Part shown: piece by piece, positions 4,128 through 31,967 of the stretch | Position numbering within the stretch: the first letter of the stretch is position 1 | How the letters are laid out: each line of letters opens with the position of its first letter | NCBI GenBank assembly: GCA_018985225.1 | Contig: JADGIF010000008.1 | Location: 15,731 to 47,730, forward strand | Origin: Amoeboradix gromovi X-113 | Taxonomy: Eukaryota > Fungi > Sanchytriomycota | Length of the DNA: 32,000 nucleotides | Reading direction: 5' to 3' | The notes under the pieces: generated by a model | Databases searched by the model: none | Seen by the model: the letters and a program-made list of their open reading frames with translations, nothing else | What the model was told of the DNA's origin: nothing | Program-made: the position numbers and the translations under genes

Positions 4128-4519
4128 TGGGACATCAAATATAAAAACTGGACTAACTTTCTGTAACAACTTGGAAGATTATTTCAGCTTTATTACTTTA
4201 TGGATTTAAGAGACGAGTGGACATTCAGCTAGTTGCGGAGTTGACGAGTATAAAAGGAAAATAATGATGTTAGTATAACATTACAAAATGACCCTAGAAA
4301 ATAGTACCGTCTAAGAAAATGCACCTTTTGCTTAGATGCTCAAAGACCTCATATATTTGAACGAGATGCAGGGTCTTCTAGTTTTATTTTGAAGAGGGGA
4401 TTGAAAGTAATGAAAGAAAGTTGGTATAATAGAAGATCTTTTATTAATGATAGCATTTCCTCCTTATGGAGCACCTTCTTTAAAAACGAGTTACTCTAGT
4501 TTTTATATTTGATGTCCCA
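4128..4519 (+). mobile_element. TIR element copy 1 (392 bp), non-autonomous, carrying a degenerate TnpB/Fanzor-like C-terminus
   Basis: Left TIR TGGGACATCAAATATAAAAACTGGA and right TIR TCTAGTTTTTATATTTGATGTCCCA, flanked by AT...AT. Frame 4305-4499 reads YRLRKCTFCLDAQRPHIFERDAGSSSFILKRGLKVMKESWYNRRSFINDSISSLWSTFFKNELL*. Frame 4202-4261 reads GFKRRVDIQLVAELTSIKGK. Confidence 0.9.
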
Positions 4520-5681
4520 ATGAACAAACAGCAATATGCTTGTCCTGTATCACGTTATTCAGTTAAATTAATCAACTATTGATGGTTCTACCTAATAGCT
4601 CTCACGCTTTTCAATAATCCCTGGTTCCTTTCTGAGATTGATTGCGGCAATGACCAATGGATGGCAAAACTTTCACAAGTTTAGCGTCTTGTAGTACATA
4701 GGACTCATTGATTATTTTCCCACACCAGCAGATGTCCAAGTAAGTTCTTTCATTATCAATAATGCTTGGATATAACTAAAGTATTAAATTTAGGTTTCTG
4801 AATACGCAATTGCTTTCTTTAGTAAAGTTGGATGTGTTTGTGGCCTAGTTTACCGCGTGAGATATGATCCAGATATCTATGGAATACTAGGCAGGTCGGT
4901 AGTGGCTTGAATTTAATGGAAATTGATAGTCTAATAAATTTTGAGTGCCAGTGCTGCTTTAAGCAAGTAACATCTAGAAATCATTTGTTAAAATGCGTAG
5001 ACTTCATTAAATTCGCTAGATCTTGCTATAATGTCAGTACGTATGCTCAATTAGAGATGCTAGTCCATGTAAGAGGTCTAATATTTATTAGTAAATAAAA
5101 TTTATATCCTGTTTGACTCGCTTTTCGTCTCCTTACTTATACACTGAATCTCAGATTTTTATTTATTGAAACAAGAAAAATACTGTATAGCAACTAGAAA
5201 GGAAATAAAAGCAAGCAGCTAAAAGATAAAGAATCGAGTTAACAGTTTTACAATGTTCAATACAAATGTTCCCTAAACTGTAGTACTGTCTTCCTAGACC
5301 TTGCAATGTCCATAAATTAACAAGGTCATGAAAAACGACAAAATTGAGTCAGACGCGGAAGGCTTCTTCAAAAGCGATATCGGCCCCACATTGGAATTAA
5401 AACTATGAAGAAAGTGAAAGAACGTGATGTGAAGTAACGCTATATTGTTATGGCATTGCAGCACAACTAAAACTGTCACCGATGAATTTCAAATAGGATA
5501 CAAACGATTGCGCTTGGTAGAAAGACTTAATTTTGATTGTCTCTTAGTTTGGGGCAAAAGAAGAGGTATAGATGAGAAATAGCTGACACATAATAGAGTA
5601 TGGAAGAAATTCTAGTAGACTGGTTTTACTTTTTTGAGACATTTGTTTTAAAACGTCCATTAATTTTTTGGAAATTCATTC

Positions 5682-6783
5682 ATGTCTATCAAGTCCATCA
5701 AAAGTGTATCCACAGTCAGAAGACCACCAAAATTGTTGTCACATACTGATTCTAAAATAAACAATGCCTTCATCAACGGTATTTACTATGTCCATTCTCT
5801 TAAAAAGTTAAAGGATTTTAATCTGCACCATCAGCAATCTGGTATAACATCGAACATAATTTATTGTGATTTCCAGCTCAAGATGAGCCAATTTGGGTAC
5901 TATTACTTGTATTCGTTTATTGAAATTGACGATTCCAGCGTCTACGACTTCGAATTAAATAGTGGCGAGTTGGAAATATTTAAAGCTGATGATTTCAAGA
6001 TCGGCAAACTTATTGCTTGTGGTAATAGTTGCAAAATCACTTTAGATTCAGGGGTTTATCTGCTAGCAATTTCATATAAACACCAGATTGATGGTGCAGT
6101 TGATGATGACCTTGTCACGTACTCTAACTCACCTGATGTATCATTAAAATACTCTTCCATAGGTGTAGCGTGGCCTTTGAATGTCAGAAACATTGAACAG
6201 CAAGTGATTCCAAAGACAAAGTGTCAGTTGCCCATAAGTTCTTTATTCACCCCGACAAAAAACGAGTTGAAATATTTACAAGTAGACAACAATTCAGTAA
6301 GTAGCATGTCATCAAGAGCCCCACAAAGACGACCAATGGCCCCGAATAAGTTAAAACGGCGCAGTTCTGCAGACCCAAATGAAATGCGAGATATTTTAGA
6401 ATACAAGGAGCATTTAGAGAGACAGTTGCATTATTATTCAAGCGTTTATAATATTAATATAGATGGCAAATCATACAACCCAAATGTTGTCTACAGTACT
6501 CGGAATTTCGTTTGATGAATCTTCTTCAAACGAAAACGTAGATTACTCAGAGTCCTTGGTGAATGAATGCAATTCTAAAGACAGAGAATCATCTTTTTCA
6601 CCACTTAGATTGCAGAGCAGTTTGGAGTTTATGAAGAATCTATGCATTTCATCACTGCTTAATCTATTGAAGAAAGAATACAACAAAAATACAATGACAA
6701 CAAGCGATGCATTGGAACTAGTTGAAGATGTTCCAGTTGAATTGTGGGTTACAGCAATTGTTAATAAATTGGAATTACAATGA
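5682..6783 (+). CDS. Hypothetical protein (~360 aa), predicted join(5682..6443,6463..6783)
   Basis: Overlapping out-of-frame ORFs 5682..6515 and 6463..6783 fuse in frame (...QLHYYSS|MANHTTQML...) when a 19-nt GT..AG intron at 6444-6462 is removed. Confidence 0.7.
6444..6462 (+). other. Predicted 19-nt spliceosomal intron GTTTATAATATTAATATAG
   Basis: GT..TAG, ends TTAATATAG (A at -6), phase 0, and joins two ORFs. Confidence 0.7.
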
Positions 6784-6890
6784 TCTCAACTTCTAGAATT
6801 TCTCTTTTACAATAGATGAGTAAATGTTATCTTATTAGTGACCGAAACAACTTCTAAGCACATATCGCTGTGACGTATCTAGTAACTCAC

Positions 6891-7165
6891 TAACTAACTC
6901 TCTGAAGTAGTTTGAATTATTATTTCAAGTGTGTATTAACCGATAGTAAATTAAATTAATCAGATTGGTTGCACCTTTTGCCCAGACACTCAAAGACCTT
7001 ATTTGAGAGAGATAGTGGGTCACCTTGTTTTATTTTAAAGAGAGGAATGGCATTAATGAAAGAAAATTGGTTTGAAAGAAGAGCTTTTATTAATAATGGT
7101 ATTTCCTCCTTATGGAATACCTACTTTAAAAAAGACTTGGTCTAGTTTTTATATTTGGTGTCCCA
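6891..7165 (+). mobile_element. TIR element copy 2, left TIR missing (5'-truncated)
   Basis: Aligns by eye to copies 3 and 5 from about 6891 to the right TIR GTCTAGTTTTTATATTTGGTGTCCCA. It encodes LFERDSGSPCFILKRGMALMKENWFERRAFINNGISSLWNTYFKKDLV*. Confidence 0.9.
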
Positions 7166-7282
7166 TGTATCCTTATCATTCCCATTTCAGGGTAAACGTA
7201 TAACTTGGATTATGAGGGTACCTGATTGGCCAATCTCTAATTTGTAATTATTACAAAAAAAAGATCACTGTACTCCTTGAAA

Positions 7283-8320
7283 ATGTTTAACAAATTCAAA
7301 GCAATGGCAGAAGAGAAGGTTACTGAGAAGTTGTCTTCAATGAACCTTGGCTCATCCTCTTCTGAAAATGCAAAATCAGACTCCAAAATTGAAATTGTAA
7401 CACTAAGCGAAATCCCAAAAGATGCAAAGCGCAAAGCATTGTTTGTTGGCATCAATTACTTTGGTACCAAGGCTGAGCTGCGAGGCTGCATTAATGATGT
7501 TAAGAACATTCGCGAGTGGCTAGAACAGAACTACAAATTCGATGAAATGAAAGTTTTAACAGATGACAACAAAGATGACATGCCAACTCACGCCAACATG
7601 GTTTCTGCATTCAAATGGCTCGTAAAAGATGCTAAACGTGGAGATAGTTTATTTTTCCACTTTAGTGGCCATGGTGGATTTATCGCTGACAAGGACAATG
7701 ACGAGCATGATTGTCAAGATGAGACCATTATCCCAGTAGACTATGAAAAAGCAGGCCAAATAACTGATGACGAGTTGCATGAGTTATTAGTTGTAGGATT
7801 ACCGGAAGGCGTTCGTTTAACTTGTCTCTTTGACTGCTGCCATTCTGGTTCTGCTCTAGATTTGCCATTTACTTATTTAGATAATGGTAAGATTGAGGTC
7901 ATCGTTAACGATTCCAACTTTCAAAATGTTGCAGTTCAGTCTTTAATGCAGAGTGGGTTAAAATTCATTTCAGGAGAAAAGGATAAGGCCTTCCAGGAGC
8001 TAGGTGATAACGTAAAGCTGTTCTTGAAAAATAGAGATAAAAAGGGAAATCCATCTGCCAAGGAAAAGTTAGCAAGTGCTGATGTGATCATGTTTAGCGG
8101 TTGTAGAGATGAGCAAACTAGTGCTGACGCAGTACTGGCTGGTAGGCCAACTGGTGCTATGACTCATGCTCTTATTAAATCATTGTCTGAGCATGGGCAT
8201 AACCAATCTTTTGTTGATCTATTAAAGAACATCAGAATTAACTTAAAAGGACAGTTTACTCAGATTCCACAGCTAAGTTGTGGTAAACCATTAGATATGC
8301 GATCTCCTTTTTCATTATAA
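7283..8320 (+). CDS. MCA1: Type I metacaspase (peptidase C14)
   Basis: RKALFVGINYFGT, LRGCINDV, catalytic His in FSGHGG, catalytic Cys in FDCCHSGSALDLPF, SGCRDEQTSAD and QIPQLS. First ATG at 7283. Confidence 0.95.
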   Translation: MFNKFKAMAEEKVTEKLSSMNLGSSSSENAKSDSKIEIVTLSEIPKDAKRKALFVGINYFGTKAELRGCINDVKNIREWLEQNYKFDEMKVLTDDNKDDMPTHANMVSAFKWLVKDAKRGDSLFFHFSGHGGFIADKDNDEHDCQDETIIPVDYEKAGQITDDELHELLVVGLPEGVRLTCLFDCCHSGSALDLPFTYLDNGKIEVIVNDSNFQNVAVQSLMQSGLKFISGEKDKAFQELGDNVKLFLKNRDKKGNPSAKEKLASADVIMFSGCRDEQTSADAVLAGRPTGAMTHALIKSLSEHGHNQSFVDLLKNIRINLKGQFTQIPQLSCGKPLDMRSPFSL

Positions 8321-8343
8321 GTAGAATAAATCTATTTATTGCA

Positions 8344-9639
8344 TTATCTTATTATTTTGATCCCAGTCGGAAGTTGCTTATCGAAATACTCACAAATTGC
8401 TTTTACATACGTAAATGTTTCTGGTGATAATAAATATTTGTCTCCTGTTTTTGTCAAGGTCATGAAAAAGACTGAATTCATTTCGATCATATCAAACACT
8501 GGGTTGTTTAAGTTGTGTTCAAAATCTGAAGTCATGAGTATTACACCCAGCTTGATCCCAAACTCGATAAATACACTTTTTATATGTACAAACTCTGATA
8601 AGAATGAAATGATATCCGCATGATCGTGTACAGTGTCTATATCAAATAGAAATGAACATTTTGCAAGTCTAGCAAAATTGCCATTTCGTAAAGTAGGAAA
8701 CTTGTTTTTAATCTTCATTTGTATCTTAAATTCCTGAACCGTTAAAACGCTAAACAGATCATCAAATAATCCAATATCTAAATAGTCATCACTCTCATAG
8801 TAGAGGGAATCTAACTTTGGTATTATAGACCAATCCAGGTCAATTAATGACTGAAAAGGAATCTTGTTTAGCTCACTTCCACAAAAGAATATATGGCCAA
8901 CTAATGGAAAAGATCTAAAAAACATTTTCAACAGCTCTTGTGGGGAATAATTTTTGAAAATGGAAGTACAAGACAAGCAGAACATTTTGATTTTATTCGA
9001 TCTGCTGAAGTCTTTGATGTTGATAAACTCGCAGTCGATTAGAGTAAGTATACGAATATTGAGGCATTTTAGAATAAATGTAAAATTCTTCCAGTTTACC
9101 AACGTTTGAGCAATTTCAACGCTGTACAGTGCTTTTAAATTGTACATGAATGCGAAGTTAAAAGAACAATGATCTTGAGGTGCAAATCTTATGTGATTGC
9201 AAGTGATGTTCCACTCTACGATATTTACAAAATCGGGATGGATATCAAGATCGACCCGAAATAAGTCATATGGTTTGATATAGGAGACCATTTTTTTAAA
9301 TTTCTTAAATGTCCTATTGTTGGGCTTCTTTTTCATTTCAATCAATAAGCGAATCCGGTAATCTGGAACATTAGCACGTATTGCATCTAAATAAGACAAC
9401 TCTTGCAGTATGAATTCATCATCCAGAACAAAAGGGTATTCTTGATGTTTAATTGCTAGATTGTATTGCAAAGCCAGCTTTGGAACCATATTCATTCTTT
9501 TTAACCCTTGCTTACGTAGCCATCTAAAAAACTCAAAGTCAAATTCTTTTTGCATCATTGTTATCAAGCTTGTAATAAAGTCTTCGTCCACGTCTGAGAC
9601 ACACTCTTGGACATCACGATTTTTTGCTAATTTTCTCAT
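8344..9639 (-). CDS. Hypothetical protein (~431 aa), possibly LRR/RNI-like
   Basis: Long intact ORF with first ATG at 9639; the track start at 9678 is a TTG overlapping the next gene. Only loose LxxLxL-like segments (LKALYSV, IRILTLIDC, LDSLYY) are seen, so the family is not established. Confidence 0.7.
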   Translation of the reverse strand: MRKLAKNRDVQECVSDVDEDFITSLITMMQKEFDFEFFRWLRKQGLKRMNMVPKLALQYNLAIKHQEYPFVLDDEFILQELSYLDAIRANVPDYRIRLLIEMKKKPNNRTFKKFKKMVSYIKPYDLFRVDLDIHPDFVNIVEWNITCNHIRFAPQDHCSFNFAFMYNLKALYSVEIAQTLVNWKNFTFILKCLNIRILTLIDCEFINIKDFSRSNKIKMFCLSCTSIFKNYSPQELLKMFFRSFPLVGHIFFCGSELNKIPFQSLIDLDWSIIPKLDSLYYESDDYLDIGLFDDLFSVLTVQEFKIQMKIKNKFPTLRNGNFARLAKCSFLFDIDTVHDHADIISFLSEFVHIKSVFIEFGIKLGVILMTSDFEHNLNNPVFDMIEMNSVFFMTLTKTGDKYLLSPETFTYVKAICEYFDKQLPTGIKIIR

Positions 9640-9665
9640 GAGAATCCCTGTTTGAGATTTGTAGA

Positions 9666-10634
9666 ATGGAAAAATCACTTCAAAATTATTTACGAGCTAA
9701 AAATGCAATTTCTTTGGAAGAATTCGAAAAAAACATAACAGACGACAAAGAATTGATGGAACTGGTACTGAAATATATTTCAAGACAAAACAGTCGAATA
9801 AAGTACAAATGTTTACAGTTATTTGTTACCCTGACAGATAAGAAAATTATCGATTTATTTTTTGATAATCTTAAAAAGTTTGTAAACCATGTTCTGAAAT
9901 CGTACAGCGCACCTCCAATATACCACAATAAATCCAGACAATTACTTTTTACATTAATTGAGAATAACTACAATAGCCGCGATCACCCAAGATTAAAGAT
10001 GGCATACTTCTATTTGAAGAAATCGTTTCCTGAATTTCATCAAGTCATACATTCAGAAACCTCGAAAAGACAGAAAATTCAGGATATTGAGTCTAGCAAG
10101 TCAAAGATGCACAAAAGCATTATAAAAGACCTGAATACAATACAAAATGAAACGAAATCAATAATATCGGATGTGGAGAATGTTTTTAATGAATATATTC
10201 CTGATTTCAAGTCTAATGGTAAAATAACTGATGAAATACCCACTGGAATCACCAAAACTCTGAATCTACACATATCTGTGAATCTTGAGAAATACAATCT
10301 CACTAACGAGCAAAACTCTACACTTTCCAAGTCTCGCGATTTAATTGACTTCAAGTATATTCCTCAATTAAAATATTTTGATGTAAAAATTAATCAGTTT
10401 TCTATAGCTGATGACATGCTAATCCAGTCTGTATACAAGGAACTGGCAGAGTTGAGAAGTATACTCAAGCAAATGAGCATATTTTCAATCAGAACTGTTA
10501 GCTCTGAGGAAGTAGACTCAGATGATGATGATTTTGAAGAAGTATTTGTTCCAAGAAAAAGAAATGCTTCTTCTGAACTTATGGTGGGTGGTAGAAAGAA
10601 AACGAGATTGGACCTATCCAACTTCTTGGCTTGA
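9666..10634 (+). CDS. UVSSA-like protein (N-terminal VHS-like helical domain), apparently lacking the C-terminal region
   Basis: NSRIKYKCLQL...APP...LKMAYFYLK and the acidic DSDDDDFEEV tract resemble UVSSA as recalled. It ends in a basic NLS-like tail (RKR...RKKTR). Confidence 0.55.
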   Translation: MEKSLQNYLRAKNAISLEEFEKNITDDKELMELVLKYISRQNSRIKYKCLQLFVTLTDKKIIDLFFDNLKKFVNHVLKSYSAPPIYHNKSRQLLFTLIENNYNSRDHPRLKMAYFYLKKSFPEFHQVIHSETSKRQKIQDIESSKSKMHKSIIKDLNTIQNETKSIISDVENVFNEYIPDFKSNGKITDEIPTGITKTLNLHISVNLEKYNLTNEQNSTLSKSRDLIDFKYIPQLKYFDVKINQFSIADDMLIQSVYKELAELRSILKQMSIFSIRTVSSEEVDSDDDDFEEVFVPRKRNASSELMVGGRKKTRLDLSNFLA

Positions 10635-11089
10635 TAGCATCTGGGAGATGATTTTGTCAAGATAGTCCCAGGGGCAGGTCAGAATAACTCTTGGGAAAAT
10701 TTCTCATCCTATTGACCTATTTAGACGCTTTACTGACAGCCCTTTTTGGCGAAGTCAGGCACATATGCTACATATTCTACGTTGGTAGAAGCGTTGTTGT
10801 TCGCATGAAAGAATTTCTCTTGTTTTCTTCCTCTTGAAGCACGAATTAGGAACCCTTTTCTACTTCTGATTCATTTATAACGTTTTAAATGCAGAAAAAG
10901 CGCATAAGAAACACGAGCCGTGTTCATGTAAGCATAGTAGCTTCACTGTTTTTATCATCATAGTTATTATAGCTGCATAAAGGGCTTCAATTTTTTCTAT
11001 GAAAACACCACAGGAAGTGCGTCAGACTTATGTGTAGACTCTATCTCATATACCATAAACTGTGTGAAACTTGACTTTGACCTCCTCTC

Positions 11090-12076
11090 ATGGACTTTAT
11101 TAGGAAAAAGTTGTCGGGTTTTTGGTGGCCATCCGATAATTTAGTCATTGAATCCGAGACCAAGCTGTTAAACATGTGCTCTATCCCGTATTCAATTGAG
11201 CTCGTGGAGTTATCAGAAAAGAAATACATAAACACGTTTAGGATACAGTCTAAAACAGAGGATAAGTCTCTTGTTATGACCCATGGTTTCGGCGCAGGAC
11301 TAGCCTACTATTTTTTAAATTTTCCAAGCTTATCAACATTGGCTAAAACCCATGGCATGTCGGTTTATGCGATAGATTGGTTAGGAATGGGCAGGTCATC
11401 TAGAAATGCCATCAACTCGTATGATATTAAAAGTGTAGAGAACTATTTTATTGATGCATTAGAAGAGTGGCGGGTTAAGTTGAGAATTCGCAAAATGATA
11501 TTGCTTGGCCACTCATTTGGAGGATATTTGTCTGTTGCTTACTCTCTAAAATATCCCGAGCACGTAGAAAAACTGATCTTAATCTCACCAGTGGGGTTTT
11601 CTGAAAAGCCAATGGCTAATCCAAGATCTCACCCAAAATGGATAGAGTTATGTTGGTATTTTAACATCACACCTCAACTGCTTCTTCGCTTTTTGGGTCC
11701 TTTCGGCAAAATTTTAGTTTCTAACATGGCGAAAAATCGCTTCATGTTTTTAAACAACGAGCAATTAGAACATATTAAAGATTATATGCTGCATATAAAT
11801 ATGAATACAGGTGCTGGCGAATTTGCTATGAATCCTCTATTGATGCCAGGTGCATATGCTAGAGATCCATTAATACATCGATTTCGTAACATACGTTGTC
11901 CCACGGCATTCATATATGGAAAGACAGACTGGATTCACACAAGTGCTGCTTATTCGTGTATAGAATCCCACCCCTTCCCTGATTTGCACAATATTCAAAT
12001 TTGTAATGGTGGCCACTTTATGTTTTTAGATAATTCAGAAGAATTTAACAGCCTTTTAATAAACATTTTGGTATAG
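11090..12076 (+). CDS. Alpha/beta hydrolase, ABHD4/ABHD5 (Cld1/Ict1)-like lipid hydrolase/acyltransferase
   Basis: HGFGAG, YAIDWLGMGRSSR, nucleophile elbow GHSFGGY, LILISPVG, YGKTDW and the C-terminal GGHFMFLD (HxxxxD). Confidence 0.92.
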   Translation: MDFIRKKLSGFWWPSDNLVIESETKLLNMCSIPYSIELVELSEKKYINTFRIQSKTEDKSLVMTHGFGAGLAYYFLNFPSLSTLAKTHGMSVYAIDWLGMGRSSRNAINSYDIKSVENYFIDALEEWRVKLRIRKMILLGHSFGGYLSVAYSLKYPEHVEKLILISPVGFSEKPMANPRSHPKWIELCWYFNITPQLLLRFLGPFGKILVSNMAKNRFMFLNNEQLEHIKDYMLHINMNTGAGEFAMNPLLMPGAYARDPLIHRFRNIRCPTAFIYGKTDWIHTSAAYSCIESHPFPDLHNIQICNGGHFMFLDNSEEFNSLLINILV

Positions 12077-12182
12077 CTGCCTTGGTCATTTCTATGTGTT
12101 TTTAGCCATTTAACGATTTAGGATATAAGGAGGAATTTGGTCAGGAGGCTAGAATTAATAATTTTTGATACTTCTCCACTGC

Positions 12183-12449
12183 ATGTCAACTTTACCATCG
12201 AAAAGACAATTAGAGACATTGGACGATGAACGAACATCTAAAAAACAGCATTATGATGATTTTAAATTTGAAGCACCCACCTATTCTTGGAAAACAATAC
12301 CGTATAAAGCCCTGACTTTACTATTAGTGTGTAATGGCATTGTGCTAGTAGTCGGTCTGACGTTTACTCTTGCAATTAATATTTTGATGATGGCTCTGGC
12401 CTTTGGTCCTTTTATTGCCCTGATACTTTTGCTTAGCAGATGGAAATAA
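12183..12449 (+). CDS. Small membrane protein (~88 aa) with a long C-terminal hydrophobic hairpin
   Basis: ATG at 12183, charged N-terminus, then about 42 hydrophobic residues. The stop overlaps AATAAA as in neighbouring genes. Confidence 0.55.
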   Translation: MSTLPSKRQLETLDDERTSKKQHYDDFKFEAPTYSWKTIPYKALTLLLVCNGIVLVVGLTFTLAINILMMALAFGPFIALILLLSRWK

Positions 12450-13054
12450 ATCTTGTTACTCAATTTTGATCCTCCACTATTCTCTCTGCAAGATTAAAAG
12501 TTATTTAACCTTACCTCTCTTTCTTAGCGCTCTTCAAGCTAAAAATTACGATTAGCAAATGCTGCAAAATCATTAACAAACCCCATCAGATTCTAAACAC
12601 AGCCTCTTTACTTAATAAATCGGTCTATAAACAATCCAAATATTTTTTTTTGTTTTCTAAACTATATTGAATGCCTAGAATTTGATAGATTAGATGGCTA
12701 ATCGATGGTATCGGTTTCTGGTTTGTATCACGTGCACCACATTAATTTTATTCAAGGAAAGAGCTCAGGGAAGATAAGCTCGCACCAATGCAGTTGACGA
12801 TATCAATGTAAATTGTTGTCTAGCAATTGTCATACTACTAGTAGTTTATCAATTCTTACTGGGTAATTCATTTAGGGTGATTACGTTAGCTATATTGCTC
12901 CAATATACTCTCTTTATAGTCTCAAACTGCATGAAAAAGCATATTAAGGACCGGTATAATAATAAGTTCCACTGTAAAGAAAAAGAATTACATTGATAGA
13001 ATAGAATGACGTATTTACTATTCAAACTTATAAAAAGTGTGGCGCTCCGAAGAT

Positions 13055-13248
13055 AATCAATTTGGGGACATATACATTACAAGATGTCATTTGGAATTAG
13101 ATAAAGAACATAATACTTGAAGTATATTTATCCCAATTCGATTTTACTGCAGGGTATTGGAATCATGAGCAACAGCTATAACTTAGCGACTGGCTTTGTC
13201 AGTTTTTCTGTGGAAACACTTGAGTTCCTCGTAAACCAGGACTTTTAG
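13055..13248 (+). pseudogene. Decayed coding fragment A, homologous to 28646..28847 (-)
   Basis: Ends ...LLQGIGIMSNSYNLATGFVSFSVETLEFLVNQDF*. Nucleotide similarity to the second copy is visible over about 200 bp, with frameshifts and stops upstream. Confidence 0.65.
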
Positions 13249-13297
13249 CGAGGAATCTATGTCTCAATTGTTGAATAAATTTACTATCTGAAAGATC

Positions 13298-14397
13298 CTA
13301 GCCCTGTCTCAGTCGCTCTACCAAAGCCTGTCTCATTTCGTCTTGGGATCTAACCTCGTCTTGGATATCATATACCTCTTGTGCATGGTCTGCTGCCAAG
13401 GGAGGATTAGTAAGCGCATCATGCACTTTAGTTACGAATTGGACCACGTTAACGGCCGTTCTGAATCTATTTAAATGGGTGTGTATATTAGGTAGTAGGT
13501 TGTGGCGCTAAGTGAGTAATAAAGTACGCCTATCTCTGCTGGTTTCCTGCCCAGCGTCATAACATTGTTCAACCACGGATGACTTAATGCTTCATCTGCG
13601 GATAGTCTCTTGAGTGGATCTACGATCAGCAAGTGCTTTATAAAGTCTTTCGCTTCTGCGCTAATTGAATTCCAGTCGCCTTTGTTAAATCGATAGTTTC
13701 CACTCATAATTCGCAAGTGCTCGTCTAACCCTTCATCCTTCTCTAGATTTTCAAAGGGAGTATATCCACAAAGTATAAAGTATGCAGTAACTCCAATTGA
13801 CCACATGTCTACGGATTGATTGTAAGGCTCGCCTAGTAATATTTCCGGAGCCACGAATCCTTTCGATCCAGCTGGGCTGAGAAGTGATGGTCTATCTAAA
13901 GGGTCTATATGTGCTGCCAATCCAAAATCTACTAATACTAAATCTAATTTGTCTTTGTGTACAAAAACAACATTTTCAGGTTTTATATCTCTGTGCACTA
14001 TGTGTTTGCCGTGAAGATATGATAGTGCACGTAACAGTTGTTTTATAATTATCTGAGCATGCCCTTCATCAAAGTGCTTTAATTTTATTAGTTTGTCCAT
14101 TAGCTCACCTCCGTTCAATAAATCCATTATTACATAAAGAAAGTGCTCCTCATAGTAGTAGTCTATTAAATGGATTACATTAGGATGATTTAATTGATTC
14201 ATAATAGCAATTTCATTATAAACATACCGATCTAATTTTTGTAATTTTAGCATGCTTAAATGGAATTTCTTACATGCATATAAGGCTCCGCTGGTGTGTC
14301 TACAAGCATAAACACTAGCAAAAGTACCTTCACCAACTTTGTTTTCGATTTGATATTGATGTTTATTCAGAGGTAAAATAAATCCATTTTCAGACAT
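13298..14397 (-). CDS. Calcium/calmodulin-dependent protein kinase (CaMK I / Cmk1-2-like), ~359 aa, complement(join(13298..13507,13528..14397))
   Basis: GEGTFASV, ACK, HRDIKPEN, DFG, APE and DMWSIGV. Removing a 20-nt intron adds RHNLLPNIHTHLNRFRTAVNVVQFV..., the autoinhibitory/CaM-binding-like segment, and the frame stays open to TAG at 13298-13300. Confidence 0.92.
13508..13527 (-). other. Predicted 20-nt spliceosomal intron GTACTTTATTACTCACTTAG
   Basis: GT..TAG, ends CTCACTTAG (A at -6), phase 0, and restores the conserved CaMK tail. Confidence 0.85.
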
Positions 14398-15005
14398 GAA
14401 AATTAATGAGTTTCAACCTATATTTGAGACAGAAAATAAGAAACTGATACCATCACATTGGAAAGGAGTTTTAATTCATAAATTTAGTCAGTTTCGCAAG
14501 AGAACCTTTATTTTAAGGACTCCATTGCCGATCAGCTTTGCCTAGGTGCTGTTATGATTCTGTGCAACTTGTTTCGTCTTTATATAAGATTTGATAGCGA
14601 TAACATGGCAATGGCAATCTTACCTATTGATTCTTTCAGGCGGCATCTCAGTGGCTTCACTAGTTTGATGGGACTTGTCTCTCGAAGTTATAAGATTGCA
14701 AATTATGTCCCCTGAGTTGGGAGTTAATTATTCTACGTTATATAGAAAGACACTACTATGTTCTATGAAAATAGATGCTGAGAGTGTTAAAATGATGATT
14801 TAAGAAAAGAAAGATTTTTTAGCTATTATGAGGAAACACCCTATAAAAAGTTCCAAAAAATTTAGAATACAGATCTTATCAAACCATTACAATAGCATTA
14901 AGACCATCATTAGGACCTGGAAACTCGAAATCCTATTGAAAAAGCAGCTTAAACGTTGTTGTCCGCCAACGCGATGAGAATTGATCGCTAATTAGTGGAT
15001 ACATA

Positions 15006-15310
15006 CGGGACATCAAATATAAAAACCAGACTAGCTTTCTGAAATTGTTTGAATTATTATTTCAAGTTTCTATTAACCGATAGTAAATTAAATTAAATTA
15101 ATCAGATTGGTTGCACCTTTTGCTTAGATACTCAAAGATCTTATTTGAAAGAGATATTGGGTCATCTTGTCTTATTTTAAAGAGAGGGATGACATTAATG
15201 AAAGAAAAGCGGTTTGAAAGAAGCAGGACTTTTATTAATAATAGTATTTCCTCCTTATGGTGCACGTACCTTAAAAATGACTTGGTCAAGTTTTTATATT
15301 TGGTGTCCCA
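15006..15310 (+). mobile_element. TIR element copy 3 (305 bp), short form
   Basis: CGGGACATCAAATATAAAAACCAGAC ... GTCAAGTTTTTATATTTGGTGTCCCA, flanked by TA...TA. The track ORF 15111..15350 is the element's residual coding frame. Confidence 0.92.
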
Positions 15311-16618: not shown

Positions 16619-16626
16619 ATTTAATC

Positions 16627-18783: not shown

Positions 18784-18806
18784 ATCAAGTTATTAAAGTA
18801 ATTCAT

Positions 18807-20055: not shown

Positions 20056-21275
20056 GTTTGACGAAAGGAGTGTCCAATTGTTCGATTTGCATCTAAGAAT
20101 GCAACATTTGCAAGGAGAATTAATTGGGGTATGTCATAGCCAATGAATTAAATAAGAATTCAAACACTTCCATCTCCTAGTTAATTTGAGGCCGCTCCAA
20201 CCTAAACAAAGATTTCAAAATAAATAGTTCTTTCTGTAATCGTGTGTTTTTTGTGCCTCTCCACATATACTTTGTAATGGAACTAATTTGGGATACAGAA
20301 ACTTGGAGCTGGGGATATGTCTAACACAGATCAGGTAAAGAGTTAGTACATCTAATTTGGGGCATTTAATGAAAATTTAATTAATTAACTATTACTAATA
20401 CTGCATTTGCGAACCAACTAGCTATGAGCAATAGGTTAGATGCTATATTCCCTGGTTGTCTGCACCTGGGAAGTGTGAACTCTGAAATACTTCAGATCTT
20501 CACAATTAGCGTAGGCGTTAATAAAATGATTTTGGATATCACAGCAAACACTAGCGTACCGAATTTTTATAAAATTTACCATGTTTGATTGCTTAGAGAT
20601 TAGACAAAATATTCTGCTATCATTCTTTCACCGCTTGTTAGAATGCATCCGATAACCTGACGATTGCTGTAACACTCATTCACGTTTACATCCACAGCTA
20701 TATTACCGCAGTGCTCAATCTAAATTACAGACTCTTATGATAGTGAATGCTCTTTTACCTGCCATCATCTACATTACGGATTTAGCAGTACTAAGTTCTG
20801 GAGTAAATATTACTAATTTCTAGCTTCTAGCTGAGAAGGATTTGAACACCTCTACGATTGTGTTTGTAATTTACATCATCATAGCAAGTAATGCTCTATT
20901 GTCTCTAAACATGAAAGAATGATAAATTCTAGCAAAGTACATAATAAGGTCAATAAATAGATTGGATACTTTTGTTGCCGATGAAAAGGCTGAGATGATC
21001 TCTTTTGTTGTCTTTAAAACTTTTCTGGCATTGAGTGGGCGCAGTGAATGCTAAAGCGTCCTTATGATTTTTTCCTGGCATTCCTTAGTAAATACATGAT
21101 GGTTAACAATTTATAGAAACTGCTGTGTAAGTTTGCACATACAAAACGAAACCAACTAAGTCCCTTCTCTTATAGACAGTGAGAATGATATATTTGCAAA
21201 GCTCAGTAGCACCCTACTTTGTAACAAATGGTGTTAAATAAGCTGATAGTTATTAATATAGCTAGACTTATTTTT

Positions 21276-21310
21276 GAGAAAGCTCAATCTTCTTTTATAT
21301 TGATGTCTCA
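21276..21310 (-). repeat. Degenerate left-end-like remnant abutting copy 4
   Basis: Minus strand TGAGACATCAATATAAAAGAAGATTGAGCTTTCTC versus family left end TGGGACATCAAATATAAAAACTAGACTAACTTTCTG. Confidence 0.55.
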
Positions 21311-21730
21311 TGGGGCACCAAACAAAAAAACTAGGCCAAGTCGTTTTTAAAGTTGCTGCTCCATAAGTAGGAGATACTATTAGTAATAAAAGTCCTGTCA
21401 AACCAATTTTCTTTCATTAACATCATTCCTCTCTTTAAAATAAAACAAGATGACCCAATATCTCTTTCAAATATATGAGCTCTTAGAGTGTCAAGGCAAA
21501 AGGTGCATTATCTGTTCCTTTTTCTTCTTACCACCTTTCGTATAACTTAATTTTTGTTTTCTCTTCTTATTAATCATTGTATCTAAGAATTTGATGGACA
21601 AAAAGCTTTTATACTAAAATAGTTTACTTGGACCAGTCAGATTAATTTAATTTACTATCGGTTGATACACTTGAAATAATGCTTCAAACTGTTTCATCAA
21701 GTTAGTCTAGTTTTTATATTTGATGTCCCA
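21311..21730 (-). mobile_element. TIR element copy 4 (420 bp), long form, reverse orientation
   Basis: Left TIR at the 21730 end (TGGGACATCAAATATAAAAACTAGAC), degenerate right TIR at 21311. Frame 21507->21331 reads CTFCLDTLRAHIFERDIGSSCFILKRGMMLMKENWFDRTFITNSISYLWSSNFKNDLA*. It has an extra 124 bp (21508-21631) relative to the short form. Confidence 0.9.
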
Positions 21731-21741
21731 TACGTTTATTT

Positions 21742-23098
21742 TTAATGATTTGCCTGTGACAGGGATCGATTTGACTTGTTGGAACTCAACTTGTTCGTAC
21801 TTATTTGTTCATCAGTGTCTTTCTCTATTTTCTTCAAACTTATGTCCTGGTTCCGTTTAAGCAGCCTCTTTGCTTTTGTCTTTTTATAGAATTGAAATAC
21901 AAATGCAGATATTATAGCTATGGATGCTGCCCCAAATCCCAATCCTAGCCCAAGAGCATATCCATTTATTGACGGAGAAGCGCATACTACATCAAAATAT
22001 AATACCTGGCACTGTTAATGGAAAATATACATCAGATGTTGGACTCAAAGTTAAATTCATTTTATCAGCGACCGCGGTAACAACAGAGCTGTCGTCTAAG
22101 TTGTCCTGCCCTAGCTCCCAGAACATGGCTCCCTTTAGTGCTTTTGAAGATATGTAGTTAATTTTGTGCTGCACCGAGTCCACATCTTCAAATGTAGTAA
22201 ACAATCCAGAATCTGGACTATAGTACCATGGAGCCTTTGCTATATTATCGAAATAGCGATTTCCTTTACTAGTTCTGCTTATATCCATGTTATTTACGAA
22301 AATATCACACTTGGAAGTGCAAGATTGAAAAAGTCCATTATTATTGTTATCGTTTTTAACAACTTGATATTGATAAGCGTAAAGGGGTATGCCCAAAACA
22401 ATTTTACTGTAAGGAACATTCATCGAAACTAGCGATTTAATCGCAGAATCTGCGCTGGCATCCTCAATTGGATCTAAAGGATTGTGGTATAATGGAGATT
22501 GATGGCTCGCCACTGTGCTACCTACACTTGCATCATATGACATCAGATTAAACCAGCTAAAAATTGGGTTAGCCTCTTCAAGATTGTAATTCTTTAAAAT
22601 ATTTGGAATGCTTGGTATAGCAGCCGTGATTTCATATTTGTACCCTAACTTCGCCCTCAAATCTTTTCCTAATTGAACAAAATAAGTTCCTTCGTTAGGA
22701 AGCGGATATTCCCAGTCTATATCAACCCCGTCTAAGCCATGTGTTGTAATTAGATCACTGATATCAGTTACGAACTTCATTCTTTTTACCTCATCTCGAA
22801 CTACTGGCATAAAAGATTTAACCCATGTCGCACCACCAACTGAGAGGTGAATCCTTAAGTGTTTGTGAGTTTGTTTTAATTGCAGCAAACTATTTAGATA
22901 GTTTATTGCGCAGCATTTATTGCATCCATCGTCTCCGAATATTATTGAACCATCATCAGTGTTTAAATTCAGGAAGCTATAAGCTATGTGAGTTAACTTA
23001 TCAGCGGGTATTTTGTTAAAATCTATAGGAGTCCAAATACTCGCATAACCAATAACAACTTTTGAGTTTGAATCCATGCTTTCTGGCCTAGTGTCCAT
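21742..23098 (-). CDS. GH18 chitinase 2 with C-terminal transmembrane anchor, complement(join(21742..21986,22006..23098))
   Basis: LSVGG, LDGVDIDWEYP, NLMSYD and MFWELGQD; colinear paralog of chitinase 1. Intron removal joins ORF 21742..21942: PVCASPSINGYALGLGLGFGAASIAIISAFVFQFYKKTKAKR... Start ATG is at 23098 or 23077. Confidence 0.92.
21987..22005 (-). other. Predicted 19-nt spliceosomal intron GTATTATATTTTGATGTAG
   Basis: CCAG|GT..TAG, phase 1, A at -6. It contains the apparent stop of the unspliced ORF. Confidence 0.88.
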
Positions 23099-23495
23099 AT
23101 GTGTCAAACTCTACAGTTTTTATGCAATCATAGGCTTATCCTAAACTCGTCGCCCAAACAGTTGGATGGATTTCAAGCGTCCTATCACTAAAGCTTCCAC
23201 CTTTCAAGGGAAGATAGCTAAAAACATGAGATTATCTTAAGCAGGAATGCAAATCTTTCGATACAGTTTTATTGAGAGCACTGGTACAGCCCAAAAGATG
23301 TTGGCAATTATGTGAGAGAATACATCGTGTGTTATATTCTACCCGAGTTTATCATAATTTTAAAGCTTTATCAATCATTGACCAGTTAGATTCAGTCTAA
23401 ATCAATTCTTTCACAATAGATTAATTAATCCACCGCATTTACTTTTTATTTGAAGAGATAAATCCAGTAGTAAGAAAGTCGTGATACCCCGCGTG

Positions 23496-25178
23496 ATGTC
23501 AAACTTGATTAACTTGGATAGAATTCCTTCTATCATAGAAGATCGAATTCAGAAATATATTGAAGAGTTCGAAACCGAATCTGATGAACCCCGTCCTGTG
23601 TCGATTGTTTATGGGACTTGGGGAGTAGGTAAGTCAACTCTGTTAAAACAAATAAAAAAAAACGAAAACAACGAACACAAAGCGTTGGTGATTCGTTTAG
23701 ATGCTGCAGCTGATGCTGGATTCTTATCTGAACAATTAAACAGTGAGTATTTCTTGAAAAAGATTGAAACTGCCAAAAAAGGTGATGATGTATTTTGCAA
23801 GTTCGGCAGATTGTATAAGAAATATATATCAGACGATATGGGACTGCAAATGCAAGCAATAAAAAACATGCTTATCTTTCCAGTTGTCATCGTTATAGAC
23901 CAATGGGATTTATTGCCTAAAACGCACCCTTGCTATAACATCCCAATGGTTCATAATAACAAAGCCCCATTGTATATTGTTGCTGGTTCTGGATCTTGGA
24001 ATCCTAAGCTATCCATTTGCTCAGATAGATATAACGAGTACAAAAAGCTATTCATGGATGATCTGTATGTTCATGTTGGCGCATTGACAGAAGCTGAGTT
24101 TAAAAGCGTTAAGGCAACGAATCCAAGCAGAATTAAAATGTCGAGGGAGATGATATTCATTAAATCTAATGGCATATTCAGACTTGTTAACTCGATTATT
24201 TATTCCGAGGAGTCTGAATGTGATGATATAATAGACTCGCAGCTCGTTGGAAACGTAGACAGAGTTTTGCTTAGAGCAAAGGATGAATACAATGAGTGGG
24301 CGCGGAAAGAAACAATTGATAACCTGGCAACAATGCTTAGGTATAGTGAAACAGATAATGATGTGGAACTGCCAAAGGAATTCTGCAGAATCAGTGGAAT
24401 TGTAAGTGACCAAAGTGACAAATTCTCTCATCCCAGATTTCAAAACGCCATTAAAAAAGTGTTGCTTGAAGATAATGTTTTAATAACGTTATTCCAAATC
24501 TTAGCACAATTAGGATTGGACCCTGATGTTAACCATTCCATGCTAGGTACATATTTTGAAGCCATATTTTGGAAGCAATCCAAAAATATAATGACTTTAA
24601 AGCTCGTATGTGAAAAGCCCTGTGTCACAAATTGTAAAAAGGCGATAAAAGAGTCATTTGATGAACTAATGGATGGAGGTATACTGACATTACAATGGGA
24701 GAGCGTAGAGTCTTTGGACAAATCAACTGATTTACAGAATCATAAAAACACATACGGGGTGTTGATTAAAATGAGTCCTAATTTTCCATTAGTTGATTTT
24801 GTGTTGGCAAAAGAGGTGGGCAATGAAGTACACATTTATGCCATTCAAGTCACCATTCAATCTTACGAAGAGCACAAGATGACAGAAGAATATTATGATG
24901 AGCAAGCAATACGATGCTACAAGTATGGGATAAAGAGGAAAGGTGATGGCGGATTCATGACCAGGTTTGGGATGAAAAATCAGACTATTCGCGATTTACT
25001 GATTCAAACATTTAGCAATGGCAAAGCCGCCAAAGTCATTTATGTTTTTATTTCACCCAAGCAGACAAAATTGCCTAGTAAAAACTGTTTCTATATTCCA
25101 CAGACAAAATGGTTTTCTGCGAGCGATACGTGGGTTAAAAGATATCTTGATGCTGCAAAATTGGAGATAGTGAAATAA
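23496..25178 (+). CDS. Crinkler/RHS-type (CR) effector-like protein: P-loop NTPase + restriction-endonuclease-fold domain
   Basis: Walker A GTWGVGKST, Walker B-like VIVIDQWD, linker LGTYFEAIF, and C-terminal PNFPLVDFV...IYAIQVTI...H, typical of CR-REase domains. First ATG at 23496. Confidence 0.75.
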   Translation: MSNLINLDRIPSIIEDRIQKYIEEFETESDEPRPVSIVYGTWGVGKSTLLKQIKKNENNEHKALVIRLDAAADAGFLSEQLNSEYFLKKIETAKKGDDVFCKFGRLYKKYISDDMGLQMQAIKNMLIFPVVIVIDQWDLLPKTHPCYNIPMVHNNKAPLYIVAGSGSWNPKLSICSDRYNEYKKLFMDDLYVHVGALTEAEFKSVKATNPSRIKMSREMIFIKSNGIFRLVNSIIYSEESECDDIIDSQLVGNVDRVLLRAKDEYNEWARKETIDNLATMLRYSETDNDVELPKEFCRISGIVSDQSDKFSHPRFQNAIKKVLLEDNVLITLFQILAQLGLDPDVNHSMLGTYFEAIFWKQSKNIMTLKLVCEKPCVTNCKKAIKESFDELMDGGILTLQWESVESLDKSTDLQNHKNTYGVLIKMSPNFPLVDFVLAKEVGNEVHIYAIQVTIQSYEEHKMTEEYYDEQAIRCYKYGIKRKGDGGFMTRFGMKNQTIRDLLIQTFSNGKAAKVIYVFISPKQTKLPSKNCFYIPQTKWFSASDTWVKRYLDAAKLEIVK

Positions 25179-25696
25179 AATATCTATGACTATTTACAAC
25201 TTGATTTATTGAATGACTTAGACAAGATGCTTGTAAAAGAATTTATTTGTCCTTTTGGGATTAGTGACTAACACTTTCTTTGTGATTTGAAATAAAAATA
25301 TTAATCGGTTAAAGACACGATATTTAACAATAATTTTTTGATTTAATTGCGCTCTTCTCCAATAGATGGCCACATATAGAATCCCATAGAAAAAATAGGT
25401 ATTACGATAATGATTGCTTTAGCTGATCTACAATACATCTGATTCAAATTTAAAATCATTTGCTAGTTGCCTGGAAAAAACGCATTGTAGACGAATAGTT
25501 CCAAAGTGCTACTTAAAGTTCTCGATGCGTAGCCTGGCATCTCGCTTAGAAATTTCTAGGAGATCAAAATTATTCATTTGCGTTTAAAATTACGCTAGAA
25601 CGTCATAATTTCAAGCGCGTACAGAAATTGAGCATTTAATTGTAAATATCAAGAAAGAATGGCGCTTTATTTTTCAAAACGTTTTTGAATCAACTT

Positions 25697-27268
25697 ATGC
25701 CTTTTGGATTGTACAACGACGTACAATATTTATGTAGCATCCATCAAGTGCTACTTATTTATTCCTCGATGTCACTGGAAGATATATCCAATGCCCTCAC
25801 TCCGATATCGCCTAGTATTTTAATTATTGAATTCTCTAAATCGTTTATATATTCTCTATTTGTTGACCCTAACTTGTCTAAATACAACATCGTAATACTC
25901 AAATATAAGCCGGATATATTTATGGATCTATCGATTAGTTTGTTGAAGAGAATATTATCGAAACGCAGCAACTTAAAGTTGATCATTTATAATTCGACTG
26001 CTGAGATGAAGTCTTATTTCAATAACCCAGGCATTTTGGAGTTCTATACAAACGAATGCGATGTTTACTATTTAGACCAGCCTTGTTCTAACATTGTTAA
26101 TTCCATAACATTTACAATAAAGCATTTGTTGAAGAATGATTCTGCTGGTACAGTTCTTGTCTTCTGCCCCGGTATAAATGAAATCAGCCAAATCAAAAAT
26201 GACTTGCAAGCAGATTCAATCAATGTCCAAGTTTGCCAAGGCGCTGCAATCCCATCATTTACTAAAAGTAGAATTGTTTTAACAAGCAATGCAGGTATTG
26301 CGGCAGACTATGTTGTTGATTCTGGAGTCACCCGAAATGTTTATTATGATGGTGTCTGCAACACTTTGATAACTGAGCATATATCAGATTATGAAGCAAA
26401 CATTAGAAGTCGATTTGCGAATACTAAATTATTTAGGTTGTACACACAGGCAGAATACAACGCGTTTACAAAATCTTGTACCAACCAGCAAGATTACGCC
26501 CAATTGGTCTACTTATTGCTATGCTTAAAATGCAAAAATCCAGTCTTTTTCGATTATTTTAACAAACCCAATTTGTATTTGTTGAACTGTGCAGTAGTAC
26601 AACTATTCCAATTATCGTTTATAAACAGCTGCGGTCTGTTGGATAACTCTGCAGAAACCTTCAAAGAAGTCCCATTGCATCCGCGGTACCTAAGAGTAGT
26701 TTCTTCGGCGTTCGACTTTAAATGCCTGGTTCCAGTACTAAAAATGATTTCAATGTGCCATGTTAAGGAGCTTTTCCTTACAAAGAACAGAAAGCAACTA
26801 GAGCAAGTACAAGAACCATTTAAGAGTGAGCATGGTGATTTGCATTCATATTTGAATATTTTTGATTTGTTTCTTAAAAATGGAGATAAATGGTCTGCAA
26901 AGCATTCATTAAATACCAAGGAGCTAAATAAAGCAGTGCGCCTATATAAGAAATGTAAAGCAGCAATAAAAGCAGCAACGAAAGTGGATTTCAGTGCCTC
27001 ACAGGTAATAAATAACGATTCCATCAAGAAATCATTTATAGACGGATTTTTTATGAATGTCATGGTGCTAGACGGTATTAGGTATAAAAGGCTAGACGAT
27101 ATTTTCGTGGATATACACCCTAATTCAGTGCTATATAACGACATGCCCAAATGGTGTATATACATAGAGGGACTTAAAACAAGCAAGTTATTTGTGCAAC
27201 ACGTCATGACTGTGGATTGGAAATGCGTAAGAGACAAAAGAGAATTTTACGAGTTTAAAAGTACTTGA
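25697..27268 (+). CDS. DEAH/RHA-family helicase homolog (DHX35/Prp43-like) with degenerate ATPase motifs
   Basis: DPNLSKYNIVIL, LLKRILSKRSNLKLII, VLVFCPGINEI, YVVDSG, FRLYT, HA2-like EVPLHP and OB-fold IHPNSVLY...PKW are recognisable. Walker A, DEAH, SAT and motif VI are not intact. Confidence 0.85.
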   Translation: MPFGLYNDVQYLCSIHQVLLIYSSMSLEDISNALTPISPSILIIEFSKSFIYSLFVDPNLSKYNIVILKYKPDIFMDLSISLLKRILSKRSNLKLIIYNSTAEMKSYFNNPGILEFYTNECDVYYLDQPCSNIVNSITFTIKHLLKNDSAGTVLVFCPGINEISQIKNDLQADSINVQVCQGAAIPSFTKSRIVLTSNAGIAADYVVDSGVTRNVYYDGVCNTLITEHISDYEANIRSRFANTKLFRLYTQAEYNAFTKSCTNQQDYAQLVYLLLCLKCKNPVFFDYFNKPNLYLLNCAVVQLFQLSFINSCGLLDNSAETFKEVPLHPRYLRVVSSAFDFKCLVPVLKMISMCHVKELFLTKNRKQLEQVQEPFKSEHGDLHSYLNIFDLFLKNGDKWSAKHSLNTKELNKAVRLYKKCKAAIKAATKVDFSASQVINNDSIKKSFIDGFFMNVMVLDGIRYKRLDDIFVDIHPNSVLYNDMPKWCIYIEGLKTSKLFVQHVMTVDWKCVRDKREFYEFKST

Positions 27269-30868: not shown

Positions 30869-30873
30869 TAAAT

Positions 30874-31677
30874 CTATTCTGATTTACTTAATTTCGATGG
30901 AGGCCATGGCACTAAAATTGAGGTTGATTTTTCATACTCTTGATATCGAGGATCCTTACCATACTTCTCATTGCACTTGGACAATGGAATACCGCTAACA
31001 CCAAGCAACAAGGTGGAAGTAAAAATTGGAGACAATGACCCTAACGCTAAGAATTTTAAAGGCAGGGATCTACAACAATACAGCCAAGCAAAGGTCCAAG
31101 TGCAGATCTCAAAAAAATAATTCGGATGCTGAGAATATTTCCATAGCCCAGTATAGGTAAAACCTGGGTCAGATTGCTTCCTGTTTGCCTTGTAATTCCA
31201 TTTTTCTTGATCTGCTACTGCTTCTAATAAGACACTAGAGATCCATCCACAAGCCAACAACTTGTCAAGGAGGGTTAATGGCTTTATTACGGGATTTAAG
31301 TTCATCAGTATTAACGGTGCTTGAATCAAGGTGCACCACAGCGCTTGAAATATCCAAACGTTGAAAAATGCTAATCTGTTATTCTTAAACTTTTCAAATC
31401 TAGTATCGCTGTTGGTTTTGTACATCCTATATGCCAAGAAGCCACCTAATCTTACTGCCCATCCAATGCTAACAGCATTCGCAATCATATGATATGATGA
31501 TTTATTTTTCATTGCAAAGACGACCAAGGCAATATGGGTTAGTGCACCACTTAGATCGTAAAGTTTCTCGCTATAATAGTAGGTACTAGGAATGCCCACA
31601 GCAGCCTGAATCCCCATTGCGATGCCGAAAGATTTGAACAGCATTTCGAAATGTTTCAGAAATAATTTAGAAATCAT
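30874..31677 (-). CDS. DUF1295 / steroid 5-alpha-reductase-like membrane protein
   Basis: SEKLYDLSG, WAVRLGGFL, DTRF, EAVADQEK, TGLWKYSQHPNYFFE and VSGIPL. The start could be the second Met (31644). Confidence 0.92.
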   Translation of the reverse strand: MISKLFLKHFEMLFKSFGIAMGIQAAVGIPSTYYYSEKLYDLSGALTHIALVVFAMKNKSSYHMIANAVSIGWAVRLGGFLAYRMYKTNSDTRFEKFKNNRLAFFNVWIFQALWCTLIQAPLILMNLNPVIKPLTLLDKLLACGWISSVLLEAVADQEKWNYKANRKQSDPGFTYTGLWKYSQHPNYFFEICTWTFAWLYCCRSLPLKFLALGSLSPIFTSTLLLGVSGIPLSKCNEKYGKDPRYQEYEKSTSILVPWPPSKLSKSE

Positions 31678-31682
31678 ACAAT

Positions 31683-31967
31683 TCGGACATGAAATATAAA
31701 AACCAGCCTAACTTTCTGAAACAGCTTGAGTCATTATATCAAGTGTGTATTAACCGATATTGAAATAAATTAAATTAATCTTATTGGTTGCACCTTTTGC
31801 TTAGACACTCAAAGACCTTATTCGAAAGAGATAGTGGTCATCTTGTTATAATTTACAGAGGGGAATGACATAAATGAAAGAAGAACTTTTATTAATAACA
31901 GCATTTTCTCCTTATGGAGCACCTACTTTATAAACGGCTTGGTCTAGTTTTTATATTTGGTGTCCCA
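31683..31967 (+). mobile_element. TIR element copy 5 (285 bp), short form
   Basis: TCGGACATGAAATATAAAAACCAG ... GTCTAGTTTTTATATTTGGTGTCCCA, flanked by AT...AT, with a short internal deletion between repeated GAAAGAA motifs. Confidence 0.92.

Follow-up and report, generated by a model that had tools for sequence, protein, structure and literature searches.

The ghost omegaRNAs of the Spu-1 elements of Spizellomyces punctatus, which belong to the Fanzor1 group, are functional, and it is an open question whether loci of this kind provide guides in trans and contribute to the maintenance of transposons (PMC10432273). For Fanzor1 elements elsewhere, the terminal inverted repeat (TIR) and the target site duplication (TSD) are predicted parts of the RNA scaffold; a DPG motif together with a Glu six residues before a CxxC is the fingerprint of Fanzor proteins, and a TDG is characteristic of Fanzor1 (PMC10711439). 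In our study, a stretch of 32,000 nucleotides from the sanchytrid fungus Amoeboradix gromovi (contig JADGIF010000008.1; hereafter the window) was analysed, which carries five miniature TIR elements that retain the 3' end of a Fanzor-like gene. Judging from the sequences of full-length relatives, these copies almost certainly originate from a Fanzor1 parent and not from TnpB or Fanzor2. Four features come together in the family: a Fanzor1 open reading frame (ORF) extending into the right end, a conserved hairpin specific to right ends, a motif shared by the left flanks and a very high repeat depth. The copies are probably non-autonomous internal-deletion derivatives, resembling MITEs (miniature inverted-repeat transposable elements), of a Fanzor1-only TIR transposon with an ORF of ~600-640 aa, and they would act as ghost loci of the Spu-1 kind.

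All five copies were found where the first-pass annotation had placed them:

4128 to 4519, plus strand: copy 1, a complete miniature element of deletion type A
4128 to 4158, plus strand: left TIR of copy 1
6891 to 7165, plus strand: copy 2, of deletion type C and without its left TIR; the remnant starts at 6970 and the hairpins lie at about 7038-7111 and 7113-7165
15006 to 15310, plus strand: copy 3, complete, deletion type C; the remnant starts at 15112 and the left flank is TACATA
21311 to 21730, minus strand: copy 4, complete and of deletion type B, with a GH18 chitinase paralogue on either side
31683 to 31967, plus strand: copy 5, complete, deletion type C; the remnant starts at 31789, the loop of the upstream hairpin is deleted and the flanks are AATT/AATT

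The 26-nucleotide TIR pattern has seven matches in the window at three mismatches or fewer, against 0.00 expected from shuffled sequences. The sharing of TIRs that had been proposed for every copy holds for both ends of copies 1, 3, 4 and 5, which are without an intact Fanzor ORF, and does not hold for the left end of copy 2, which begins ~25 nucleotides inside the element. At the left end each copy retains ~60-100 nucleotides, and at the right end the final ~200 nucleotides; the pairwise identity of this right part is 80-89%. The observation that all copies keep the same right part stood, but it does not represent five independent retentions: copies 2, 3 and 5 have a common deletion junction and a common 4-nucleotide frameshift, and hence only three deletion types are present in the window (copy 1; copy 4; copies 2, 3 and 5).

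In copies 1 and 4 a single frame can be read as far as a TAG located within the right TIR, as had been described; the translation was checked and gave the following coding remnants:

4257 to 4499, plus strand: Fanzor1 C-terminal remnant of copy 1, with linker, second CxxC, RuvC-III ERD, tail and a stop inside the right TIR
21331 to 21507, minus strand: Fanzor1 C-terminal remnant of copy 4, open to the stop in the TIR
21512 to 21577, minus strand: probable ORF start of copy 4, an ATG followed by ~20 basic codons, resembling the N-termini of P0013, P0007 and P0009 by eye and having the same start as P0005

The second CxxC and the RuvC-III Asp are still present in both copies, and the DPG region is deleted from the window copies. 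The remnant of copy 1 matches the family profile, of which copy 1 is itself a part, with an independent E-value of 4.6e-19, and it matches the independent protein P0007 with a tblastn E-value of 5e-8. It keeps ~20 codons more on the upstream side, interrupted by an in-frame stop at 4302-4304; copy 4, on the other side of the deletion, probably keeps the start of the ORF. A VxExTS string in copy 1 was also considered as a trace of the RuvC-II Glu and was rejected, as the family profile gives no support and loose contig ends at 4262/4264 suggest that this region was cut by a further deletion.

The bias towards synonymous differences between copies, which the first-pass annotation took as a mark of former coding sequence, is confined to one part of the remnant. 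In the 27-codon core CTFC..KRG it is present, mainly between subfamilies: the proportions of synonymous (pS) and nonsynonymous (pN) differences are 0.40 and 0.11 for copies 1 and 4 (Fisher p=0.011), and the comparison of copy 1 with the related locus L004 gives p=0.0002. In the 32-codon tail up to the stop little or no bias is seen (copy 1 versus copy 2: pS 0.19, pN 0.20). Such a core-restricted bias fits parents that would have diverged as working genes before the deletions took place.

The type of the parent was identified through its full-length relatives. The profile of copies 1 and 4 gave eight matches among 1.84 billion proteins, all of one family and including P0007 of 616 aa, and further searches added the relatives P0009, P0010, P0012 and P0016. 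The full-length relatives of the retained peptide span 515-642 aa, and two family fragments belong to the EukProt set of A. gromovi; proteins encoded in the window are likewise present in EukProt. An exact search of metagenomes with the window TIR gave seven loci. The metagenome contig L012 holds a complete 2.07-kb element with TIRs at 151-181 and 2191-2221, nearly identical to those of the window, and a single 642-aa ORF; its stop lies inside the right TIR, and the codon context there agrees with that of the window. A second complete element, L018, encodes a protein 70% identical to that of L012, and neither element carries a TnpA gene, in line with a eukaryotic-type transposon and not with IS607. 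In L004 a window-type right TIR is joined to an upstream RuvC-II region, with ~70% DNA identity to the window copies; because the same right TIR and the upstream RuvC-II match occur together, this locus ties the fungal-type element to the full-length protein. When the peptide or the full-length relatives were used in a related-locus search of metagenome and viral contigs, no matches were obtained, and a tblastn search of phages gave none either.

The comparative analysis of all six full-length proteins showed [TS]DG, G-x-DPG, two CxxC motifs, a Glu six residues ahead of the first of these, and ERDxxSA; in P0013 these are placed at TDG 321, GVDPG 355, E570, CxxC 577/603 and ERD 616. The G-x-DPG of RuvC-I is thus found in 6/6 relatives, including two flanked by window-type TIRs, and the E570/C577 spacing of P0013, which corresponds to the rearranged RuvC-II Glu, is repeated in the five other proteins. 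P0013 and P0016 have TDG, and the remaining full-length proteins have SDG. The zinc-finger spacers of P0013 comprise 22 and 11 residues, as against 12-18 and 4-8 in the published TnpB search pattern (PMC10711439). Moreover, the clusters nearest to P0007 and P0013 in the ESM Atlas are proteins of nucleocytoplasmic large DNA viruses (NCLDV) with Cas12f1-like_TNB/DUF8286 (score 0.98); the Atlas model of P0007 has a template modelling (TM) score of 0.70 to the NCLDV TNB clusters and of 0.64, by row, to a TnpB cluster, and the Pfam family Cas12f1-like_TNB is detected on P0002 with an E-value of 9.6e-6.

The earlier proposal of internal-deletion derivatives of a Fanzor-encoding DNA transposon is borne out by these relatives with their Fanzor fingerprints and by the near-identical TIRs of L012, and the parent can be specified as Fanzor1. 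The divergent RuvC-III context pointed out at that stage was seen as well: ERDxxS[AS] occurs in the intact relatives with the catalytic Asp kept, and since these share it, it characterises the clade and does not stem from decay. The possibility that the parent ORF encodes a DDE transposase, or some other protein outside the RuvC group, was also checked and did not hold; the relatives were found to carry the DPG, the alternative Glu, the CxxC-CxxC pair, the Asp and the TDG. A derivation of the peptide from a DDE transposase, an unrelated zinc-finger gene or a chance frame is hardly conceivable; the 64-aa peptide alone retrieves nothing meaningful from Pfam or the Protein Data Bank (PDB), and the atlas neighbours of a weak model include DDE_3 proteins at a TM score of about 0.27, which is not meaningful, whereas L012, L018, the family matches and the motifs of the full-length relatives all contradict such a derivation.

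Contigs with a major capsid protein of NCLDV, a D5 primase and VLTF3 also bear copies with the TIR of the window, and L012 is too short for such a viral marker; in L011 the capsid ORF is at 7913-9130 on the minus strand. A further TIR remnant lies at ~6820-6847 of L018, 3 kb from its element, and L015 has two element ends, at 127 and 1243, ~1.1 kb apart; hence the family is multicopy within viral contigs. The distant relatives P0012 (L016, 9822-11614) and P0010 (L007, ~7935-9770) also lie between GAG/GGG..CTC ends. L016 has its own 36-nucleotide TIR and a terminal hairpin, both 3' of the stop, and therefore the overlap of ORF and TIR varies within the clade. A search of IMG/VR with the TIR gave no match.

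The right ends of the copies are predicted to fold into two hairpins, which in copy 1 are positioned as follows:

4394 to 4463, plus strand: upstream long hairpin, within the C-terminal tail; candidate omegaRNA stem
4467 to 4519, plus strand: terminal hairpin of ~53 nucleotides, in which an inner, inverted and degenerate TIR copy pairs with the right TIR; candidate omegaRNA core

With the TIR held fixed and the 5' arm shuffled, the terminal hairpin has z scores of -1.6 to -5.1 in 12/12 right ends, against -0.6 to +1.2 in eight left ends (0/8 fold). The hairpin of the window copies is that of L012 and L018; between window and viral copies the 5' arm is 42-58% identical and the TIR 85-100% identical, with a double change at 3/13 consensus pairs. 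The upstream hairpin is present in the fungal family, which has a longer tail, and the insert is absent from the viral elements. Its z score is -2.0 in copy 1, -2.7 to -3.8 in copies 2, 3 and 5 and -0.6 in copy 4, and indels among the copies cluster in its loop. No match was obtained in an Rfam search. As modelled, the right-end hairpins fit an omegaRNA scaffold that would include the TIR, as predicted for other Fanzor1. A putative role of the window copies as omegaRNA or ghost loci is supported by these predicted folds and by the analogy with known systems.

The hairpin might otherwise be a DNA-level feature for end recognition, that is an inner inverted TIR, and the protein a Fanzor that is now non-cutting or repurposed. 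The terminal hairpin does have a degenerate inverted TIR as its 5' arm, the locus L013 carries the 53-nucleotide hairpin with no Fanzor coding sequence adjoining, another residue stands in place of the Asn of RDxNAA, and the spacer from CxxC to Asp has 11 residues as against the published 4-8. However, the hairpin is confined to right ends and tolerates many G-U pairs, which suits RNA, and the D-E-D triad is intact in 6/6 full-length proteins, so that this explanation is very improbable. The hairpin of L013 (2131-2183) lies beside an unrelated 308-aa ORF, among tandem repeat-protein genes of a type found on the giant-virus contig L009, and may belong to a minimal element or to one with a different cargo. 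At L005 (62-144) the left end is an inverted second copy of the hairpin-bearing right end, which could give two guides.

The left flank of copy 1 supplies a further candidate component of the system:

4122 to 4127, plus strand: left-flank motif TACAAT of copy 1, candidate target site or target-adjacent motif (TAM) plus duplication

The flanks of the four intact left ends read TACAAT, TACATA, AACGTA and TACAAT and have ACRWW in common, which is a candidate TAM; the frequency of WACRWW in the window is 0.006, the motif being derived from the same four sites. In twenty-two contigs the match starts with the first motif base of copy 1 (4122), and the viral copies are without the motif. In case of Spu-1, the CATA to the left of the elements is the TAM of SpuFz1 (PMC10432273). 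Among the flank-derived 16-mers, 4/5 are unique in the window or match low-complexity A-rich sites only, and the flank of copy 4 is a TIR remnant.

The element ends are GGG/GAG..CCC/CTC throughout, and most end flanks read AWWT. An AATT duplication is perfect at copy 5 and L018, 3/4 at copies 1, 3 and L016, and poor at copy 4 and L012; an alternative reading with T..A termini and a 2-bp AT/TA duplication fits the window copies about equally well. GRG..CYC termini fit Sola2, and both the ends and the duplications look Sola2-like. A degenerate left-TIR remnant at 21293-21310 on the minus strand adjoins the right end of copy 4; the imperfect duplication there may be due to this remnant, and its position suggests that copy 4 was inserted into or next to an older copy. 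A partial TIR-like 8-mer is seen at 4111-4118, just 5' of the left end of copy 1. In agreement with the earlier statement that the window has no transposase, none was evident by eye in its ORFs and intergenic gaps, nor in the fetched elements, a Sola profile not having been run.

In the proposed mechanism, a cut-and-paste transposase encoded elsewhere, probably of the Sola type, would recognise the TIRs and amplify a few deletion masters. The 3' tip of the gene would be kept as a passenger by every derivative and would double as scaffold, since the right end would itself be the omegaRNA scaffold and share sequence with the last codons. Transcription through the right end would then join the scaffold to ~15 nucleotides of the flank of that copy as guide, as at the Spu-1 ghost loci. 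Further, an intact Fanzor1 acting in trans, from another locus or from a virus, may cleave the allele that has no insertion at that site (with a TAM of about ACAWW in the left flank), and this cutting would favour retention or copying of the insertion. The chance that at least some copies make loadable guides appears to be even.

The single junction and frameshift common to copies 2, 3 and 5, the lost left TIR of copy 2, the hairpins weaker than those of intact elements, and the general knowledge that TIRs suffice for MITE amplification would also suit copies that are Fanzor1-derived but inert MITEs. These would have kept the right 200 nucleotides through few deletion masters or through subterminal needs of the transposase, making no guides today, and the host Fanzor may be dead. 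Against such inertness, the last ~190 nucleotides or more are kept in 5/5 deletion types (three in the window, L004 and L005), the indels between copies gather in the loop of the upstream hairpin, and L005 has its second, inverted right end; we regard this alternative, the main one, as rather unlikely.

Several points nevertheless weigh against the ghost-locus reading and the Fanzor1 parent on which it is built. The terminal hairpins of the window have z scores of -1.8 to -2.8 as against -4.2 to -4.6 for intact viral elements, as decay would predict; the segments for the z test were picked after inspection of the folds, and the structures are predicted only. The copies have diverged by 11-20%, and only three independent deletions are represented in the window. 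Our own AlphaFold models are of low confidence (pLDDT 38 and 49) with no significant fold match and are not counted as evidence; they gave weak matches to RuvX, Cas9, Cas12 and IscB (Z 4.5-5.4), the best viral rows being Cas12f1-like TNB with E-values of 0.05-0.08. PDB searches using hidden Markov models of the family alignments did not reach SpuFz1. An intact Fanzor or transposase of this family could not be shown in this genome, the whole assembly not having been searched.

A search for sequencing runs containing the window gave one DNA run and no RNA run. The abundance of the family was judged from the summed contig depth of this DNA run (2,017 records), which is not a true copy number. This depth is 115,000-153,000 for copy 1 and 7,000-27,000 for copy 2, against 38-40 for the flanks, and no subfamily in this run is covered more deeply than that of copy 1. 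These depths suggest hundreds to thousands of family copies. The loose ends in contigs over copy 1 further indicate that less-deleted relatives exist in the same run. The published assembly of A. gromovi has 48.7 Mb raw and 10.5 Mb after cleaning, with 36.3% GC (PMC8371127), and the GC content of the window is 35.5%. In its furthest form, the proposal would describe a divergent Fanzor1 lineage that moves between giant viruses and the sanchytrid on one TIR system, with on the order of a thousand guide-only copies in a compact parasite genome of ~10.5 Mb, each with a different flank-derived guide; no larger natural repertoire of guides would be known from eukaryotes, and a rare intact nuclease, or one borne by a virus, would serve it in trans. 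We consider this extension speculative and, taken as a whole, unlikely.

As for the neighbouring genes of the window, the GH18 chitinase paralogues stand in tandem at 18967-20055 and 21992-23107, on either side of copy 4. The 565-aa ORF at 23481-25178 has an N-terminal P-loop/STAND-like NTPase, and its C-terminal stretch we take, by eye, to resemble a restriction-type nuclease, as in Crinkler-like proteins. At 25685-27268 a DEAH-helicase-like ORF is found, in which Pfam detects an OB-fold only and the motor motifs look eroded.

This study has several consequences for the search for Fanzor systems. Sequence searches of Pfam, NCBIfam and PDB miss this Fanzor1 clade or score it below threshold. 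The intact genes P0013 and P0016, the predicted scaffold, the predicted TAM and the many natural scaffold variants make a ready test system, and the ghost family bears on the question of guides in trans and transposon maintenance raised for Spu-1 (PMC10432273). That one TIR occurs in giant-virus contigs as well as in the nuclear genome of a fungus is a concrete lead towards a spread of Fanzor by viruses. Even if no RNA is made, a major MITE family derived from Fanzor would still be present in the reduced genome of a fungus. In the literature, no paper connecting Amoeboradix with Fanzor was found.

In comparison with Spu-1 (PMC10432273), the family has in common a ~2.1-kb single-ORF element with inverted repeats of ~30 nucleotides and no internal transposase, many ORF-less copies with the right end kept, a zoosporic fungal host, and a motif just left of the left end (CATA in Spu-1; ACAAT, ACATA or ACGTA here). 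In contrast to Spu-1, the ORF here runs into the TIR and the ghosts consequently carry its last ~60 codons, the copies are 275-420 nucleotides long and apparently far more numerous, and the parent has no detectable sequence similarity to SpuFz1. The Sola2-associated Fanzor1 elements DFa-1/2/3 and PPa-1/4/5 of dictyostelids (PMC3627910) likewise have Fanzor1 inside TIR elements with 4-bp AWWT-like duplications; however, their TIRs measure 12-21 bp as against ~26-31 bp here, and no Sola transposase sequence is present in any element fetched here. The Fanzor1 elements of Nucleocytoviricota and insect viruses (e.g. SfAV, HAgv-1; PMC10711439, PMC3627910) are similar in being non-autonomous TIR elements with Fanzor1 only, in large DNA viruses, and with TIR and TSD predicted in the RNA scaffold, whereas the clade described here is divergent, with ERDxxS[AS]x[FY]IxxRG and longer zinc-finger spacers, and viral contigs have nearly the same TIR as the nuclear genome of a fungus, where it is present at high copy. 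Hence, the new aspects relative to these systems are the divergent clade, the ghosts with coding remnants, the apparent scale and the TIR that the family has in common with giant viruses.

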